Sequence record: NC_042100.1
Strand: one strand, 5' to 3'
DNA length: 64,000 bases
In this document: in pieces, positions 29,050-36,362 of the stretch
Layout of the letters: each line of letters starts with the position of its first letter
Numbering within the stretch: position 1 is the first letter of the stretch
Program-made: the position numbers and the translations under genes
Notes under the pieces: generated by a model
Database searches by the model: none
Told to the model about the DNA's origin: nothing
The model's input: the letters and a program-made list of their open reading frames with translations, nothing else

Positions 29050-29081
29050 TTATGAGACTTAGTTTTCTTAAGGAAGCAACT

Positions 29082-29870
29082 ATGAAAGAACGCATCGAGA
29101 AATACCAAGCCAGATTTTTATGGCTGGCTGAACAAGCTGGCATCAAAGTTAACCACCAAATTGTTCAGTTTTGTACCATCAGTAATAATAAGAATGACCC
29201 AGCTCATAACTTAGAGCACATCTTAGGTGTTATACGCCTCGGTGTGGAGTTAGGAATAAAGAAGGGATACTACGGCACCAATGAGATGAAAATCATCTAC
29301 TACGGCTGCCTCATGCACGATTTGGGCTGTCGTTGGGATCGTGCTGGTCATCACGTGGAGTCAGCCGCTATTGCTGAAGAACTGTTATCGGTATTTGATT
29401 CTGATATGACAGAAAAAGAGATAGAGGAAATATCTCGTTGTTGTTTAGAGCACCGAAGTAGTTACCGTGGTGGACCTACTACTGAATTAAGCACTTTGGT
29501 TGCATTATCGGACAGGGGAAAGCCTAATTTTCCTTTGTATGTAATGCGTGCTTTTCAGTTCAGAATTAAAGAAGAGTTAACCCAGAAACAAATGACTTCG
29601 GAAGTTTACCATCACTTATTGGATAAGTTTGGTAAAACAGAAGGTTATAACTGGGTCAGCTATCCTACGTTAGGAATGGATCTTTTTGCAGAAGAGTGGA
29701 AAGAATTCGATCGCTTGCTATTGCGTAAGAATGTGAACTCTTTAGTGAATACTTATACTGAACAGTTTTTAAAGTATGGTAAAGTCCATCCCGTGGAAAC
29801 CATAGACCGTCAGTACATGGGGTTATGGGGTAAGCGTAACAATAATCGTAAAATTAAATTTAGAGGTTAA
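29082..29870 (+). CDS. HD-domain metal-dependent phosphohydrolase (262 aa)
   Basis: AHNLEH, MHDLG, HHVESA, EHR and SDR motifs; AAGGA RBS supports the start at 29082. Confidence 0.85.
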   Translation: MKERIEKYQARFLWLAEQAGIKVNHQIVQFCTISNNKNDPAHNLEHILGVIRLGVELGIKKGYYGTNEMKIIYYGCLMHDLGCRWDRAGHHVESAAIAEELLSVFDSDMTEKEIEEISRCCLEHRSSYRGGPTTELSTLVALSDRGKPNFPLYVMRAFQFRIKEELTQKQMTSEVYHHLLDKFGKTEGYNWVSYPTLGMDLFAEEWKEFDRLLLRKNVNSLVNTYTEQFLKYGKVHPVETIDRQYMGLWGKRNNNRKIKFRG

Positions 29871-30780: not shown

Positions 30781-30793
30781 TCAATTAAATCAG

Positions 30794-30822
30794 GTGGGTC
30801 CTTCGGGACCCACTCCTTTTTT
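30794..30822 (+). terminator. Intrinsic terminator
   Basis: GTGGGTCC-TTCG-GGACCCAC (C-UUCG-G loop) followed by a T run. Confidence 0.85.
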
Positions 30823-31259: not shown

Positions 31260-31508
31260 ATGAAATGTCATTCACGTAATACATCGCTTAATAAGAAGTT
31301 TGTTGCGTTTGAACTTCTTGTTGTTATCGGGTATCGATGAAACCATTGGTGGGATGTTTGGGTGGTAAACAAAGGCGATGCAGAAATTACTGATTCATCT
31401 CCCAAACTTAGTGATAAAGCTAAAAAGAAACTGATCAAGGAGTATCGTGAGAACTTGTATAAAAAAGTCAATCTCACTTTACCTGTTGAGGAAAAGAAAG
31501 AGGATTAA
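31260..31508 (+). pseudogene. 82-codon frame with one internal TGA (31338-31340); alternatively a 48-aa ORF from the GTG at 31362
   Basis: One frame fills the gap exactly: MKCHSRNT...GYR*NHWWDVW...EEKKED*. Confidence 0.4.
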
Positions 31509-31511
31509 ATT

Positions 31512-32156
31512 ATGTCTATCATCAGCGTAGATAGAAGTGGATTCATGGTCACTGCGGTAACCGAGCGTGGACCTTTCTGGTGCATGACAACCTCCGCTAG
31601 CCGTCCAGTTTGGAACAAAGACTTCCCTATAGAGCGGGAGGAGGGTGTAGTTGAACATGTGGTATATGGTGCGAACTACGATGACGCCGAAGGAAAGGAT
31701 TTTTCTTCTAATGAATTTTACGACATCGCGTGGTTGTATCAAGTTGAAAAATTAGAAGAAGGTAACTACCCTCTTCGTCACCCACTTATGGTCCACAGTA
31801 AAATGGGAGAACATCGCTGGGCTGGATTAACTGACAAAGGTACTTTATTAACCTTAAAACTTGACGACAGAAATTTGAAGATTAAGTTTTATGATGTTAG
31901 CGACGGTGGTAGTTATCTCATTGACAATGACTGTGAGAAAGGTCTTCCGATCGCAAGTGAAGTTGTTGGAGTCTTAGACGGTACCGAAAGTCTACAATGG
32001 GGTATGTTGGCTAGTCTCAGAAAGGACACCCCTAAGTTAGCCAAGGTGTTTTCTGCTGATCGAGACATAAGCGTTGTGATGTCTATGAACCCAAAACCTG
32101 AAACATTGGATAGTTGGGTGACCGCTCTGGATGAAAAGCTAGGAGAATTAGTATGA
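31512..32156 (+). CDS. Hypothetical protein (214 aa)
   Basis: GAGG RBS; ORF track. Confidence 0.8.
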   Translation: MSIISVDRSGFMVTAVTERGPFWCMTTSASRPVWNKDFPIEREEGVVEHVVYGANYDDAEGKDFSSNEFYDIAWLYQVEKLEEGNYPLRHPLMVHSKMGEHRWAGLTDKGTLLTLKLDDRNLKIKFYDVSDGGSYLIDNDCEKGLPIASEVVGVLDGTESLQWGMLASLRKDTPKLAKVFSADRDISVVMSMNPKPETLDSWVTALDEKLGELV

Positions 32157-32869
32157 CTTTAGTTGTTGGATTTTTAGGTGACATGATGGCTGATTCTAAG
32201 GCGGTAAGTTGTACCGAAGAGTTAGAGCGTCGTCCTCGGGTCGCTACGCATGACCATCTTAAGATCATGCCGGCACCTAACTTGACCCCTCCTTATGTTG
32301 ACGAAGAAGGGACAGAACATACCCCGGATTTCATGGGGGTGGCAGGGAACACTAACGCGGTAGAGATGCTTAAATTAGATCCCACGGATATGTTAGGTTT
32401 GTTTGGTTTGGAGAAATTCATTCCGGGGGAATACGACATGTCTTTGATCAATTTTAACATGGACATTGGTATCTCTTTAAAGGTTATGTTCCGCGTCGGT
32501 GAAAAATTCTTTACCGTGGAATTTGACGGGTGTTCTTTGGAGATCTCTAAATTAACCAAGTATGCTTCTATGGGTAGTGGTGCGGGACCATTCCGCGTCC
32601 TAACTAAAATGTTCTTTGATGACAAGGGAGTGACAGGTCAAGATCTCGCGACTACCTTTAAACTACTCATGTTATCTGGTGCGGATAAAACCGTGGGAGG
32701 GAGGTTCCAATACTTGTTATCCGGAAAGGATAACGTTTTTAGTGAAACACCTAAGATCACTCAAGAAGACCGGGAGAAATTAGTAAAGCGTTACAAAGAG
32801 ACACTTTATAAACTAAGCGGTCACGAACTCCCTAAAGAGGAGGAAGAAGAAAAGATTGAAAAGGAGTAA
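32153..32869 (+). CDS. Ntn-hydrolase, HslV/proteasome-beta-like peptidase (238 aa)
   Basis: N-terminal M-T nucleophile (TLVVGFLGDMMADSKA), GVAGN, SMGSGAG and D-K-T-V-G-G motifs. Confidence 0.7.
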   Translation: MTLVVGFLGDMMADSKAVSCTEELERRPRVATHDHLKIMPAPNLTPPYVDEEGTEHTPDFMGVAGNTNAVEMLKLDPTDMLGLFGLEKFIPGEYDMSLINFNMDIGISLKVMFRVGEKFFTVEFDGCSLEISKLTKYASMGSGAGPFRVLTKMFFDDKGVTGQDLATTFKLLMLSGADKTVGGRFQYLLSGKDNVFSETPKITQEDREKLVKRYKETLYKLSGHELPKEEEEEKIEKE

Positions 32870-32872
32870 AGT

Positions 32873-33442
32873 ATGAAAGAAAACACCATCAAGTTGGTGT
32901 TGTTGGACGTGATCAAAGCTTACCACTCATACCTTGGAAACGAGGTATGGGAGGAAACCTTATTAAAGGCCAATAACGGTGACTGTGTCTGGATAGCCCA
33001 ACTTACAGCGTATGTCCTTAGACATGGGTTTGACTTCACTGTAGAAATTCAGGACTCTCCATATCACACGTTTTTGGTGTACGATGGTAAAGTCTATGAT
33101 ACCCTTAACTTTAATGGTGGGAACGTCCTAAGTTTGCCGTTCTATGGTGTGTCGAATGAACACCGTAATAAAGTAAACCCTTTGGATTATTTTCGCTTGG
33201 CTCCTTGGGATAAAGACATCTATTCGGTCATGCATCACGTATGTGCTCAGTATGGGATAGTCCCGATGACATGTGTGGGGGATGAATTTGGTGAACCTGA
33301 GTTCATTACTATTAACAGTAGTGTGGAAGAACAAAATCGTTTAGAGTTAATGGACATTGACGTGGAGTATCGAGTCTCACCGGGTTTCGATACCGAGCAA
33401 GTACATGTTGTCGAAGTTAAAGATAAAAATCTAGGTAGTTAA
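32873..33442 (+). CDS. Papain/transglutaminase-like Cys-His-Asp protein (189 aa)
   Basis: NNGDC...HTFLVYDGKVYD candidate triad. Confidence 0.6.
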   Translation: MKENTIKLVLLDVIKAYHSYLGNEVWEETLLKANNGDCVWIAQLTAYVLRHGFDFTVEIQDSPYHTFLVYDGKVYDTLNFNGGNVLSLPFYGVSNEHRNKVNPLDYFRLAPWDKDIYSVMHHVCAQYGIVPMTCVGDEFGEPEFITINSSVEEQNRLELMDIDVEYRVSPGFDTEQVHVVEVKDKNLGS

Positions 33443-33444
33443 GA

Positions 33445-33834
33445 ATGTTGTTCACGGTTGGTGCGTTAATTAAAAATGCGGAAGGTAAACTGTTGATCCA
33501 AAATCATAAAAAGATTGGTGGATTGACTATCCCTAGTGGAAAGTTAGAAGATAACGAACGTGACGTGATTGGACTGACTCGGGAATTGAAAGAGGAATTA
33601 GGCGTAACAACTCTTTGGGTTGGCAAGCGTTTAAGTAAGTGGCGACAAACCTACGAGAGTTTAGGTGTTGTTGATCAAGCCCTATACGAAGTGGTATTAA
33701 ACGAAGAACCACGGAACATGGAACCAAACAAGCACACTTCCCAAACTTGGATGTCTATTGAAGAAATCAAATCAAGTGGGGAGAAACTCAGCGGATATTT
33801 AACTAAAGTTTTAGAACTGGAGAAAACAAAATGA
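33445..33834 (+). CDS. Nudix hydrolase (129 aa)
   Basis: Complete Nudix box GKLEDNE-RDVIGLT-RELKEELGV. Confidence 0.92.
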   Translation: MLFTVGALIKNAEGKLLIQNHKKIGGLTIPSGKLEDNERDVIGLTRELKEELGVTTLWVGKRLSKWRQTYESLGVVDQALYEVVLNEEPRNMEPNKHTSQTWMSIEEIKSSGEKLSGYLTKVLELEKTK

Positions 33835-34988
33835 GTAAACAAATTAAAGAATTAATGTACCAGCTGGTCGATTCATTTTCGATTATCGCTAACCTTAAGC
33901 ACCATAAGGCGGTTCAGTATTTGAACAGCGCGCATTGCTACGCGGTGGCAACGTTAGCACAACATATCTTAAAAGAGAAGCATGATATTACGGTGAACCT
34001 GAAGTCACACCCACATCATAGCTTCTTTGAACATGATGGCATCTACTACGATACGTTGTTTCCGGTAGGTTATCCGATACACCCTTCTGAAGTATGGCGT
34101 ATGGAAGAGGCTCGGTGTCGTACCTCCTTGGACGATTGGGACTTTGGTGAATGTGGGATAGTAAACCCGGACCCAGCTATCATCGCGTGGGTGGAGTATG
34201 TCACGGAAAGACTCGGGATCAGTCAACCTAAGTTTTACTGGGAAATGATTGAAGACTTTGAAGACCGTGGTTCTTACACCAAAAAACCTATCAAGGGGGT
34301 CTACCATCACACCCTAGGTAAATATCGTCGTAAAGTTAAGCGTTACCGCCTCCGAGCATGGAAGTTCCGTAACGTAGAATGGAAAACGTTCATGATTGGT
34401 TGGATGTCTGTGTTCACTCCGGATCCCGATGATCTTTGGGTGGATCTAGAAGTCATTGAATACGATAAGTGGGTGAAGAAAGTAATCTCCACCGTTTACC
34501 CTCCTTACGAAGAAGTAATGGAAAAGTGTTTTGACGTAAAAGATGTGAATCTGAAAAAATCAAACGGCGTCATCATAGGTGGTACCGCGGGGTTTAAACG
34601 TGATAATCTCTGGGGAATGTGTGCCACCACTGAACCTGGATCGACCATCTTTAAGGGAGTGGAAGAACGCGAACTGACTATAGAAGTTCCAGAAAACTTG
34701 GGTGAAATACTTGATGCCGCGGCTTGTCGTCTCAGTGAGAAACATCAAGCGGCTAGTTTCCCTCGTGGTTGTCCTGCTGGAGTTAAGTTCTATGATGACG
34801 CCGGTTACGGGATAGTGGAAGGTATACCTTTCGATTCCAAAAAGACATTAACATTAGGTTCACCTGATAAACTGGAAGATGACCCTGAACGTGTATACTT
34901 TGCTGTCGAAGATGACGAGGGTAAAGTGAGTTACACGGATGATCGAGAAGCGTGGTTAAATAGGGACTCCGGTGATAGCGAGGAATAA
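33831..34988 (+). CDS. Papain/transglutaminase-like Cys-His-Asp domain plus unknown C-terminal region (385 aa)
   Basis: NSAHC...HSFFEHDGIYYD; paralogous to 32873-33442. Confidence 0.6.
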   Translation: MSKQIKELMYQLVDSFSIIANLKHHKAVQYLNSAHCYAVATLAQHILKEKHDITVNLKSHPHHSFFEHDGIYYDTLFPVGYPIHPSEVWRMEEARCRTSLDDWDFGECGIVNPDPAIIAWVEYVTERLGISQPKFYWEMIEDFEDRGSYTKKPIKGVYHHTLGKYRRKVKRYRLRAWKFRNVEWKTFMIGWMSVFTPDPDDLWVDLEVIEYDKWVKKVISTVYPPYEEVMEKCFDVKDVNLKKSNGVIIGGTAGFKRDNLWGMCATTEPGSTIFKGVEERELTIEVPENLGEILDAAACRLSEKHQAASFPRGCPAGVKFYDDAGYGIVEGIPFDSKKTLTLGSPDKLEDDPERVYFAVEDDEGKVSYTDDREAWLNRDSGDSEE

Positions 34989-35009
34989 CATCGTATGTAA
35001 GGAGAATCT

Positions 35010-35216
35010 ATGAATAAACTAGCAATAGCGGCTGTGGTGGCCGCTACTTTACCACCGCCACGTTCACTAACAATAGAGTGTGATTGGGAAGAAGGTTTTG
35101 ACTACGACTTTATTACAACTGAGCTAAGAAGACCGCCTCTCAAGATCGGTGCAGTCGGTATGAGTGGTCAGAACAGCATAGGTCATTTTTATTATTACAT
35201 TAGAAGGAACAACTAA
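35010..35216 (+). CDS. Hypothetical protein (68 aa)
   Basis: AAGGAG RBS. Confidence 0.7.
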   Translation: MNKLAIAAVVAATLPPPRSLTIECDWEEGFDYDFITTELRRPPLKIGAVGMSGQNSIGHFYYYIRRNN

Positions 35217-35217
35217 T

Positions 35218-35589
35218 ATGTTTAAGAAAGAGAATTTAAAGATCTTTTTCATCGCTTTAGTGTTAGCCGGACTATATCAGCTTTTACTTAGTTTAGTCCC
35301 CAGTGTTTACGAGTCTCAAGGAGAGATCGTCAATATACGAGAACAAACTCTTCAGACCACGACAATCAATTTTCCTACCGTCGGGGAACCTAAAAGAATT
35401 GAACCCGAGATAAATTCTTTTGTACGTTACGAGATAGAAGTCTTAATAGAAAGAAAGATTGTTTCGTGTGTATTAAAAGAAGAACAGTACGGTTTGTTAC
35501 GTGGGACTAATTTCGTTAACGTGACTTATGAAATGATGGATAACGGTGAGTATCGTTGCATCAACCTAATGCCAGTTAAGGAAGGATAA
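35218..35589 (+). CDS. Membrane-anchored protein with a two-Cys beta domain (123 aa)
   Basis: N-terminal hydrophobic helix; paralogous to the next gene. Confidence 0.78.
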   Translation: MFKKENLKIFFIALVLAGLYQLLLSLVPSVYESQGEIVNIREQTLQTTTINFPTVGEPKRIEPEINSFVRYEIEVLIERKIVSCVLKEEQYGLLRGTNFVNVTYEMMDNGEYRCINLMPVKEG

Positions 35590-35888
35590 TGAAAACGACA
35601 ACGTTGATCAAAACACCAATTTACGGGTTAATTAGTTTCTTAATTTCGTTCCTACTTTGGTGCAATATTAATTACGAAACCAATGAAGCTAACGGACGAG
35701 TCACGGACATCTTCCCAACGAATGAGGATGAACTCACTTACGATTACTTCATCCTCACGGGGGATGAACTCATTCAGTGTAAATTAGACGAAGAAAAACA
35801 TCGTTTAATGGATGGACGTAAATACGTTAAGATTAAATACGGCACCTTTCCTACCGGAGAACAAATCTGTTTAGCGGTGATTATTTAA
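35589..35888 (+). CDS. Membrane-anchored protein with a two-Cys beta domain (99 aa)
   Basis: N-terminal hydrophobic helix; TAATG coupling; paralogous to the previous gene. Confidence 0.78.
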   Translation: MKTTTLIKTPIYGLISFLISFLLWCNINYETNEANGRVTDIFPTNEDELTYDYFILTGDELIQCKLDEEKHRLMDGRKYVKIKYGTFPTGEQICLAVII

Positions 35889-35967
35889 CATACAGTTACT
35901 TTCAAGTCTATATAACCTAAGTGAATAACAATGGGTTATTCATCAATCAATTAACCTTTAATAAGGA
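35884..35967 (+). repeat. 84-bp promoter/stem-loop/RBS cassette, copy 2
   Basis: Near-identical to 25580-25663. Confidence 0.85.
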
Positions 35968-36333: not shown

Positions 36334-36362
36334 CCTCCTACTACCCAATGGGTAGTAGGAGG
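36334..36362. terminator. Bidirectional intrinsic terminator
   Basis: CCTCCTACTACCC-AAT-GGGTAGTAGGAGG between convergent genes. Confidence 0.85.

Follow-up and report, generated by a model that had tools for sequence, protein, structure and literature searches.

A proteasome-family threonine hydrolase gene coupled to an apparently inactive paralogue in Vibrio phage Aphrodite1 and its relatives

The first 64,000 bases of the 237.7-kb genome of Vibrio phage Aphrodite1 (MG720308 / NC_042100), referred to here as the window (bases 1-64000, the whole stretch that was analysed), carry a pair of overlapping genes for two proteins that belong to the proteasome fold family. The downstream gene encodes gp029, a putative threonine hydrolase with a conserved catalytic set, and the upstream gene is an open reading frame (ORF) of 214 aa, hereafter the partner, whose product appears to be a catalytically dead paralogue of gp029. 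The portion of the window used as query matched bases 31500-35900 of this genome at 100% identity. Aphrodite1 is classified in Aphroditevirus, Gorgonvirinae, Chimalliviridae, i.e., among the nucleus-forming jumbo phages. Here, we establish the modelled fold and the conserved catalytic set of gp029, the paralogy of the two proteins, the universal adjacency and start/stop overlap of their genes, an old tandem duplication of the pair, and a graded synteny of the genes that surround it. On balance, we favor the reading that the locus is built around a module of two genes, in which a catalytically competent proteasome-family (HslV / 20S-beta-like) Thr peptidase and an inactive paralogue of the same fold work as a complex.

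An earlier note on this DNA had grouped gp029 with the three genes that follow it, which encode two proteins with a Cys-His-Asp signature (gp030 and gp032) and a Nudix hydrolase (gp031), as a candidate protein-modification or anti-defence operon. The partner was overlooked there, and it is the only universally coupled companion of gp029.

Results

gp029 is predicted to be a proteasome-family threonine hydrolase

An AlphaFold2 (AF2) model of gp029, derived from a 17-member alignment, had a pLDDT of 83.4 and a pTM of 0.79, and contained 11 strands and a C-terminal helix, together with two pairs of helices at 67-75/77-82 and 144-155/162-175. This layout corresponds to S1-S11 and H1-H4, plus H5, and matches the published definition of the proteasome-like family (PMC8665760). 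When the model was searched against the PDB with Foldseek, at least 500 matches were returned at E <= 0.001, and the best 50 were all 20S proteasome subunits, with E values from 6e-7 and a probability of 1.00.

The catalytic definition of the proteasome family comprises a Thr or Ser at the mature N-terminus, Asp17, Lys33, the oxyanion Gly47 and a Gly-Ser-Gly loop (PMC8665760). The conserved residues of gp029 follow the order of Thr1, Asp17, Lys33, Gly47 and Gly-Ser-Gly, and lie on matching strands. Across 17 members of the gp029 family, with identities down to 23%, Met1, Thr2, Lys37, Gly65, Gly92, Gly141, Ser142 and Gly183 are invariant and Asp14, Gly143 and Gly182 are near-invariant. An independent set of 16 members derived from related loci displayed the same pattern, with Thr2, Lys37, Gly65 and Gly141 present in 16/16, Ser142 and Gly143 in 15/16 each, and Asp14 in 15/16, the remaining member having Glu at this position. 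All members of both sets (16/16 locus-derived, 17/17 from the database) start with Met-Thr, followed by hydrophobic residues. E. coli HslV also has a Met-Thr start and no propeptide, and removal of its initiator Met, in line with the specificity of methionine aminopeptidase, exposes the Thr. By analogy, the initiator Met of gp029 would be removed as in HslV, exposing the Thr nucleophile.

At the sequence level, 4 of the 17 family members individually matched phrog_1040, a family labelled 'peptidase HslV family' (best E 2.5e-7), and the same family was matched at 1.3e-5 by the third gene of N-terminal-nucleophile (Ntn) type in a distant contig, L012 (related loci are given here by their L numbers where they have to be told apart). 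These matches form a non-circular sequence bridge from the gp029 family to HslV. No NCBIfam match was found for gp029, and its relationship to the proteasome rests on the predicted structure plus this PHROG bridge. The earlier proposal of a Thr-nucleophile peptidase resembling HslV or the proteasome beta subunit is thus borne out by the fold, the catalytic residues and the bridge to the HslV family.

The gp029 family is very small. An exhaustive HMMER search of 1.84 billion representatives recovered 12 proteins, all of 231-262 aa and matched from approximately residue 1. Six of these were looked up, and all six were located on phage-like contigs. By tblastn, the range of the family comprised only Gorgonvirinae-type Vibrio and Photobacterium phages.

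The spacing between Lys37 and Gly65 of gp029 is 28 residues, compared to 14 between Lys33 and Gly47 of the proteasome. The ~14 extra residues are conserved, proline-rich and confidently modelled, and they are situated at the S3/S4 site. In connectase, a monomeric ligase, an insertion at S3/S4 forms a two-helix lid that covers the active site and sets specificity (PMC8665760). Because the gp029 segment sits where connectase carries this specificity element, the active site may be less accessible and fewer substrates may be accepted. The C-terminal tail of gp029 is charged.

The gene that overlaps the gp029 start codon encodes an apparently inactive paralogue

The partner ORF overlaps the start codon of gp029 by 4 bp and is unannotated in both the GenBank and the RefSeq records of Aphrodite1, and its product was not found in a collection of 15 billion proteins. 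It matches phrog_33796, and annotated syntenic orthologues are present in phages pTD1, VP4B, phiKT1028 and phiKT1019. Iterative searches among the proteins of related loci joined the partner and gp029 families, in both directions. Because iteration on a small database can drift, separate profiles were built for the two families and compared by hhalign. The comparison of 16 catalytic-type with 14 partner-type sequences yielded a probability of 97.6% and an E value of 4.5e-12 over 177 columns; 0/1,500 shuffled decoys reached the listing threshold, and 23 unrelated phage proteins scored <= 2.3%. An earlier hhalign comparison on shallow alignments had given only 31%, and the result became decisive after distant loci were added.

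The partner family does not keep the catalytic columns. In its 14 members, position 2 is occupied by Ser, Pro, Ala, Lys, Gly, Phe or Gln, and never by Thr; the equivalent of Lys37 is retained in 0/14, that of Gly65 in 1/14, and the Ser of Gly-Ser-Gly in 0/14. The sole column common to the partner and catalytic families is that of the structural Gly92. Because of this loss, we read the partner, as judged from these alignments, as a catalytically dead paralogue of gp029.

In 18/18 pairs, the stop codon of the partner gene overlaps the start of the catalytic gene by 1 or 4 bp. Start/stop overlap of this kind is typical of subunits produced in fixed proportion. The active and inactive subunits would then be made in fixed proportion and, like the beta and alpha subunits of the 20S proteasome, assemble into a hetero-oligomer.

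A Foldseek search of BFVD with the gp029 model also matched a protein of 211 aa from Vibrio phage 2 TSL-2019 (E 2e-5, probability 1.00). This protein is probably the first-pair partner of that phage, which has a partner gene of exactly that length.

The pair was duplicated in tandem long ago, and the first copy has decayed in Aphrodite1

Two tandem partner/catalytic pairs are present in phiKT1019, 2 TSL-2019, L008/L009, L010 (= L015), L011 and L012, the last of which carries one further catalytic-type gene beyond its two pairs, and a single pair is present in pTD1, VP4B and phiKT1028. In a distance tree, the catalytic genes of first pairs and those of second pairs form separate clades, and the duplication is therefore older than the divergence of these lineages.

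A remnant of the first pair persists in Aphrodite1 as one piece, the outer bounds of which are given in Table 1, with 62% identity to the intact gene of L008 (tblastn, E 8e-28). The arrangement of the remaining sequence points to a single large deletion in Aphrodite1 that took the whole first-pair partner gene, approximately two-thirds of the catalytic gene and most of an upstream gene of 151 aa. Sequence left over from the 151-aa gene is spread over two reading frames, i.e., with at least one frameshift. The annotated gp028, of 48 aa, lies inside the remnant and resembles the C-terminus of gp029; it is not an independent gene. The annotation of Aphrodite1 is hereby corrected on two counts, the partner being a missed gene and gp028 a remnant.

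Conservation is universal for the pair and graded for its neighbours

Co-conservation was assessed over 10 distinct loci (L009 and L015 are duplicates of L008 and L010), of which 9 include downstream flank. The partner and catalytic genes are found together in 10/10 distinct loci, the most distant included. Among the loci with downstream flank, the long Cys-His-Asp gene (gp032 type) is present in 8/9 and the Nudix gene in 6/9. Counted among the eight are L014, the most distant contig, where the homologue encodes 251 aa and is located 2.6 kb downstream, and phiKT1028, where it is 3'-truncated. The short Cys-His-Asp gene (gp030 type) is intact in five loci, and the copy in pTD1 is 5'-truncated and lacks the Cys. 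Conservation of the gene neighbourhood, proposed in the earlier note as a check on the operon, is therefore complete for the pair, of which the note listed only gp029, and graded for the neighbours.

The Nudix stop codon overlaps the start of the gp032-type gene in Aphrodite1 (4 bp), phiKT1019, L008, L010 and L016. Upstream, nucleotide-metabolism genes directly precede the cluster in all loci, namely those for an HD phosphohydrolase and thymidylate synthase, plus DHFR in relatives.

gp030 and gp032 carry a conserved Cys-His-Asp domain

gp030 and the N-terminus of gp032 are homologous and have in common a domain of ~100 residues, with Asn34, Cys38, His65 and Asp76 of gp030 equivalent to Asn32, Cys36, His63 and Asp74 of gp032. 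The same domain is present in Agricanvirus phages of Erwinia (Simmy50 gp109) and in Totoro, a phage of Serratia. Across 12 sequences, drawn from jumbo phages of Vibrio, Erwinia and Serratia, Asn34, Cys38, His65, Gly72, Tyr75, Asp76 and Gly82 (gp030 numbering) are invariant, and the equivalent residues are invariant in 18/18 sequences of the gp030 and gp032 families.

An AF2 model of gp032 was confident for residues 1-230 and below a pLDDT of 50 for residues 230-385. Cys36 is located at the start of a helix (36-51), His63 on the next-but-one strand (63-68), and Asp74 immediately after the strand that follows (71-73). In papain-like and transglutaminase-like enzymes (clan CA), the Cys lies at the N-terminus of a helix and the His and Asp on the strands that follow, in the order Cys-His-Asp. 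The layout modelled for gp032 corresponds to this arrangement.

Searches for the fold itself gave less. With the full-length gp032 model as the query, the best Foldseek match in the PDB had an E value of 0.35 and a probability of no more than 0.11, a weak negative because ~40% of the query is of low confidence. The domain profile found nothing among PDB sequences, and no Transglut_core or peptidase Pfam family was matched at E <= 5 by the 12 members. The only recurring Pfam match was to PF24591, Phage_YunG-like, a family for which neither an assigned function nor a solved structure was found; this match was seen in 6/12 members over the stretch from the Cys to the Asp (best E 5.7e-4); all scores were below the 27-bit gathering threshold, that of gp030 being 12.8 bits. 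Of the earlier description of gp030 and gp032 as papain/transglutaminase-like, the invariant Cys-His-Asp residues and the helix-strand-strand layout stand, and the fold is unconfirmed.

Past the domain, gp032 comprises an Arg-rich segment, a second conserved block that extends to approximately residue 235, and a C-terminal part that varies in length and sequence, is hypervariable between relatives and is predicted to be disordered. gp032 is the fastest-evolving protein of the set, with 40% identity between Aphrodite1 and phage USC-1, compared to 85% for gp029 and 86% for gp030. Among the orthologues compared (USC-1, PDCC-1 and 2 TSL-2019), the USC-1 allele of gp032 scores with the pTD1-type alleles. 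This pattern in gp032 suggests exchange of alleles between genera, rapid divergence or diversifying selection. The gp032 homologue of VP4B, gp038 (L003 7513-8817), ends in a Gly-rich hydrophobic stretch that resembles a membrane anchor and is absent from the others.

Two observations concern the Erwinia phage Simmy50. A gene for a MazG-like pyrophosphatase, gp105 (L006 2035-2682), lies ~1.3 kb upstream of the Cys-His-Asp gene and loosely echoes the adjacency of Nudix and Cys-His-Asp genes in the Vibrio phages, which may be a coincidence. Simmy50 gp110 (182 aa), which adjoins the Cys-His-Asp gene, was considered as the 182-aa Erwinia protein with a proteasome fold in BFVD; this was rejected, with no support from HMM, Pfam, PHROG or hhalign comparisons, although a resemblance in structure alone may exist.

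gp031 is a MutT-like Nudix hydrolase

gp031 matched the Pfam NUDIX family with 44.3 bits, against a cut-off of 21.1 (E 2.3e-11), and the residues Gly32, Glu38, Arg46, Glu47, Glu50 and Glu51 of its Nudix box (G-x5-E-x7-R-E-x2-E-E-x-G) are invariant in 6 orthologues. That it is an intact Nudix hydrolase, as the earlier note had it, is confirmed by the Pfam threshold and the invariant box. The closest solved structures are small MutT-type enzymes (5x1x, E 1.7e-6). Searches against NCBIfam gave 13 matches, all far below their equivalog cut-offs, with MutT, pyrimidine dNTP diphosphatase and RNA pyrophosphohydrolase families, and NudG-type enzymes as well, ranked above NudE, a hydrolase of ADP compounds (E 0.048); the equivalog cut-off was reached neither for MutT (8-oxo-dGTPase) nor for ADP-ribose pyrophosphatase. 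A role for gp031 on ADP-ribose, which had also been suggested, finds no backing in these comparisons, which place the protein closest to MutT-type nucleotide pyrophosphatases rather than to ADP-ribose enzymes.

Gene order and transcription unit

The four tightly packed ORFs on the + strand that had first drawn attention to the region were recovered unchanged and correspond to gp029-gp032, the first two junctions being gaps of 3 bp and 2 bp and the third an overlap of 4 bp (Table 1). The sequence features that the earlier note named in them are real, and their conservation is well above what chance would give. Three of these are labelled hypothetical in RefSeq and one 'MutT/NUDIX hydrolase'. 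The extent previously assigned to the set, 32153-34988, is correct for gp029-gp032; the unit begins further upstream, at least at the start of the unannotated partner ORF.

Terminator-like hairpins, identified by pattern match only, bracket the region, and for this reason a single transcription unit is suggested that begins with the partner gene and takes in the four small genes downstream. The hairpin 3' of the thymidylate synthase gene is the probable 5' boundary of the unit and the hairpin that precedes the convergent tail-tube gene its probable 3' boundary. A scan for sigma-70 promoters returned 16 sites, compared to 15.8 expected from shuffles, i.e., no excess.

Table 1. Features of the gp029 locus, in coordinates of the window
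Feature	Coordinates	Strand	Description and basis
Terminator-like hairpin	30793..30814	+	Directly 3' of thymidylate synthase; 9-bp stem with 6 G-C pairs, G+C-rich, T-rich tail
Remnant of first-pair catalytic paralogue	31278..31508	+	C-terminal third; holds annotated gp028 (31362-31508)
Partner, 214 aa, apparently non-catalytic proteasome-fold paralogue of gp029	31512..32156	+	phrog_33796, hhalign, synteny
gp029, predicted catalytic proteasome-family Ntn (Thr) hydrolase, 238 aa	32153..32869	+	AF2, Foldseek, conserved columns, phrog_1040
gp030, short Cys-His-Asp protein, 189 aa	32873..33442	+	Homology to gp032 N-terminus; domain at residues ~1-100
gp031, MutT-like Nudix hydrolase, 129 aa	33445..33834	+	Pfam NUDIX, intact Nudix box
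gp032, long Cys-His-Asp protein, 385 aa	33831..34988	+	Domain at residues ~1-100; AF2
Four small downstream genes: 68-aa ORF, 123 aa, 99 aa, 87 aa	35010..36239	+	Syntenic in relatives
Strong hairpin	36334..36362	.	13-bp stem; between the cluster unit and the convergent tail-tube gene

Several features of the flanking genes were also recorded. The first of the small downstream genes, at 35010-35216, is a 68-aa ORF that is unannotated in Aphrodite1 and has no family match, and counterparts are found at the same position in L008, L009 and L016 (68 aa), phiKT1019 (69 aa) and phiKT1028 (73 aa). The two genes that follow, gp033 and gp034 (35218-35888; 123 and 99 aa), are paralogues of each other, as indicated by cross-matches between phrog_30414 and phrog_29045; both products have hydrophobic N-terminal segments, as read from the translations, and the genes are kept 3' of the cluster in all relatives. 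Upstream, the HD-domain phosphohydrolase has its longest ORF at 29052-29870, with a start at 29052, and the RefSeq start is at 29082; the annotated start is favored because alignments with orthologues begin at residue 11 of the longer product. The thymidylate synthase gene, thyA, is split into two coding pieces in phiKT1028 (L004 3253-5294) and L014 (2023-3434), where it is interrupted by a homing-endonuclease gene and by a small ORF for an I-TevI-type DNA-binding protein, respectively. This looks like a mobile intron in both; thyA of Aphrodite1 is uninterrupted.

Comparison with known proteasome-type systems

A viral proteasome homologue as such is already known. Phage proteasome homologues of the groups PPH, AAH and CPH were catalogued in 2021, with no clue to function (Fuchs, Alva and Lupas, Bioinformatics 2021, PMC8665760), and the survey, in which the gene context was described as uninformative for every new group, considered that many homologues may not form stacked rings (PMC8665760). 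Like gp029, the members of these groups are tailed-phage proteins with a proteasome-family Ntn fold, no propeptide and no co-encoded AAA+ partner. However, PPH proteins are ~140 aa long and lack helix H2, whereas gp029, at 238 aa, has both helix pairs and the C-terminal helix. The exhaustive HMMER search described above contained no PPH, AAH or CPH members and no proteins of PPH size and, because it yielded none of the hundreds of members of these groups, the gp029 family is separate from them at the sequence level. Also unlike the groups of the survey, gp029 is always coupled to an inactive paralogue and often tandemly duplicated. The present phages are not listed in the supplement text of PMC8665760, the jumbo-phage surveys PMC7824862 and PMC13282480 make no mention of proteasome-like, HslV, Ntn or transglutaminase proteins, and in the phiKT phage paper the genes are left without annotation. 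What sets the present case apart is a separate, very small sequence family that standard models miss, a subunit that is full-size in the model, with a C-terminal helix and an S3/S4 insertion, and an obligate coupling to a dead paralogue, the pair having been duplicated in tandem long ago.

The fold is widespread in phages: with the gp029 model as the query, the BFVD search gave ~40 phage proteins with a proteasome fold at E <= 0.001, several of which are annotated as HslV or proteasome subunit. Matches came from the nucleus-forming jumbo phages Noxifer, 201phi2-1, Special G, RisingSun, Deimos-Minion and Moabite, and further matches from Acinetobacter, Aeromonas, Caulobacter and Gordonia phages.

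The closest parallel to the gene pair is the 20S proteasome, in which, as in the gp029 locus, a subunit with an active Thr1 has a homologue without the catalytic residues as its counterpart. The 20S alpha subunit has an N-terminal helical extension and the particle consists of four stacked heptameric rings, whereas the phage partner has no such extension. No similarity between gp029 and 20S subunits was found at the sequence level by Pfam, PDB profile or exhaustive searches. The two phage proteins have no closer relatives than one another, and their divergence into an active and an inactive form therefore took place within this phage family.

HslV resembles gp029 in its N-terminus, as described above, and differs from it in its partners. 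HslV pairs with the AAA+ unfoldase HslU, usually encoded by an adjacent gene, whereas on the coding strand of the gp029 locus no HslU-like AAA+ gene was detected in ~8 kb upstream or 1.3 kb downstream, and none of the 20 neighbouring ORFs scanned had an AAA+ domain. HslV is a homo-oligomer without an inactive paralogue, in contrast with the gp029 family, and the compact group I homologues, HslV among them, lack the C-terminal helix that gp029 possesses.

In the bacterial Anbu operon (Anbu with a transglutaminase, ATP-grasp and Alpha-E), as in the gp029 locus, a proteasome homologue without an AAA+ partner lies beside a protein with a Cys-His-Asp signature. However, Anbu has no inactive paralogue as a partner, and for gp030 and gp032 a transglutaminase fold is not confirmed. 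Neither ATP-grasp nor Alpha-E Pfam domains were found in the 20 surrounding ORFs or in the called genes of related contigs. The comparison with Anbu drawn in the earlier note, with the transglutaminase in common and the ATP-grasp ligase absent here, is accurate, but the analogy is a partial one.

Discussion

The data presented above are consistent with a module in which gp029, after exposure of its Thr nucleophile, and the partner form an active/inactive assembly. Such an assembly would cleave proteins or peptides in the infected cell, i.e., it would perform peptidase rather than ligase chemistry.

Several points weigh against this reading. gp029 has no Pfam match at E <= 1, Pfam Proteasome included; no PDB sequence was matched, either by phmmer with the single protein or by a search with the family profile; and the exhaustive profile search of 1.84 billion representatives returned no canonical proteasome or HslV member. 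TM-scores to proteasome subunits in the Foldseek search of the PDB are moderate (0.35-0.58), and the active-site set was assigned by order along the sequence and strands, not by measured spatial proximity. The hetero-oligomer is argued from genetics alone. The partner lacks an N-terminal extension like that of the alpha subunit, aligns with gp029 from the first residues and is shorter (214 vs 238 aa). Moreover, proteasome-like proteins need not be peptidases or form rings, connectase being a monomeric ligase (PMC8665760). With respect to the wider gene set, phiKT1028 keeps the pair and lacks the Nudix gene and gp030, its gp032 homologue being shortened (3'-truncated), and no proteasome-family signal was found in the genes that adjoin the Cys-His-Asp gene of the Erwinia and Serratia phages, so that the linkage of the Cys-His-Asp genes to the pair holds within this Vibrio phage clade.

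The neighbours of the pair are clade-specific, facultative companions that probably share its transcription unit. Because the Nudix stop codon overlaps the gp032 start codon in Aphroditevirus-type loci, the gene arrangement makes it probable that the Cys-His-Asp proteins and the Nudix hydrolase cooperate with each other, and they may also cooperate with the peptidase.

The alternative that survives best, although we consider it rather less likely than not to hold, is that no integrated system exists beyond the pair itself, with the Nudix hydrolase serving as a dNTP-pool enzyme that belongs to the adjacent nucleotide-metabolism genes, the Cys-His-Asp proteins acting independently, and the adjacency being historical. 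The MutT/NudG-type similarity of gp031 and the presence of nucleotide-metabolism genes directly upstream in all loci agree with this, as do the occurrence of the Cys-His-Asp domain by itself in the Erwinia and Serratia jumbo phages and the variable gene content 3' of the pair. However, a strong hairpin of terminator type lies between thymidylate synthase and the cluster, the Nudix stop codon overlaps a gp032-type start in five loci, and the Nudix gene always lies between or beside Cys-His-Asp genes and never beside thymidylate synthase.

A second alternative concerns the pair and its chemistry. The pair could be a connectase-type enzyme, either a sequence-specific processing enzyme or a transpeptidase/ligase, in which the inactive paralogue is a substrate-binding or regulatory subunit and which has a single phage or host protein, or a small number of them, as its target. 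The conserved extra residues of gp029 are located at the site of the connectase insertion, no AAA+ unfoldase gene lies nearby, and the caution about stacked rings voiced in the 2021 survey (PMC8665760) would apply to this family as well. We nevertheless regard this alternative as unlikely: the gp029 insertion is predicted to consist of extended coil and short strands and not of a two-helix lid, the best Foldseek matches are ring-forming 20S subunits, the pairing of active and inactive paralogues is a hallmark of ring assemblies, and a host unfoldase could serve in place of a phage-encoded one.

Least probable of the alternatives is the hypothesis of the earlier note that the four genes (or five, with the partner) form one counter-defence system that strips host-installed protein tags (isopeptide or ubiquitin-like conjugates, for which the Cys-His-Asp enzymes would be responsible, and ADP-ribose, for which the Nudix hydrolase would be) or destroys defence proteins, with the peptidase as the agent: the tight packing on the same strand in what is probably one transcription unit, the long Cys-His-Asp gene that accompanies the pair in 8/9 flanked loci, L014 included, the fast evolution (40% vs 85-86%) and hypervariable C-terminus of gp032, which would fit a protein in an arms race, and the Anbu analogy are all compatible with it, but there is no substrate evidence for either activity, searches against PADLOC and anti-defence families gave a generic Nudix match plus one weak match treated as chance, gp031 is nearest to MutT-type enzymes (with NudE at E 0.048), the Cys-His-Asp fold is unconfirmed and the Anbu ATP-grasp and Alpha-E are absent, and the Nudix hydrolase and gp030 are dispensable in several relatives.

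Returning to the two-gene peptidase module, a bolder extension can be formulated, namely that a proteasome-type particle of several subunits, with up to two active and two inactive paralogues as a result of the old tandem duplication, evolved independently in the nucleus-forming jumbo phages of Vibrio and, together with a fast-evolving cysteine enzyme and a Nudix hydrolase, serves as a dedicated viral system that degrades or deconjugates host factors. We consider this extension improbable as a whole.

The most valuable result is the pair of active and inactive paralogues, which escaped the author of the earlier note. The locus supplies gene context for phage proteasome homologues, in the form of a coupled dead paralogue, an ancient duplication of the pair and a recurring set of neighbours. 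If the hetero-oligomer is real, it would represent a second, independent origin of the 20S-type split into active and inactive subunits, and the first in a virus, and nucleus-forming phages would own a proteolysis machine in the cytoplasm.

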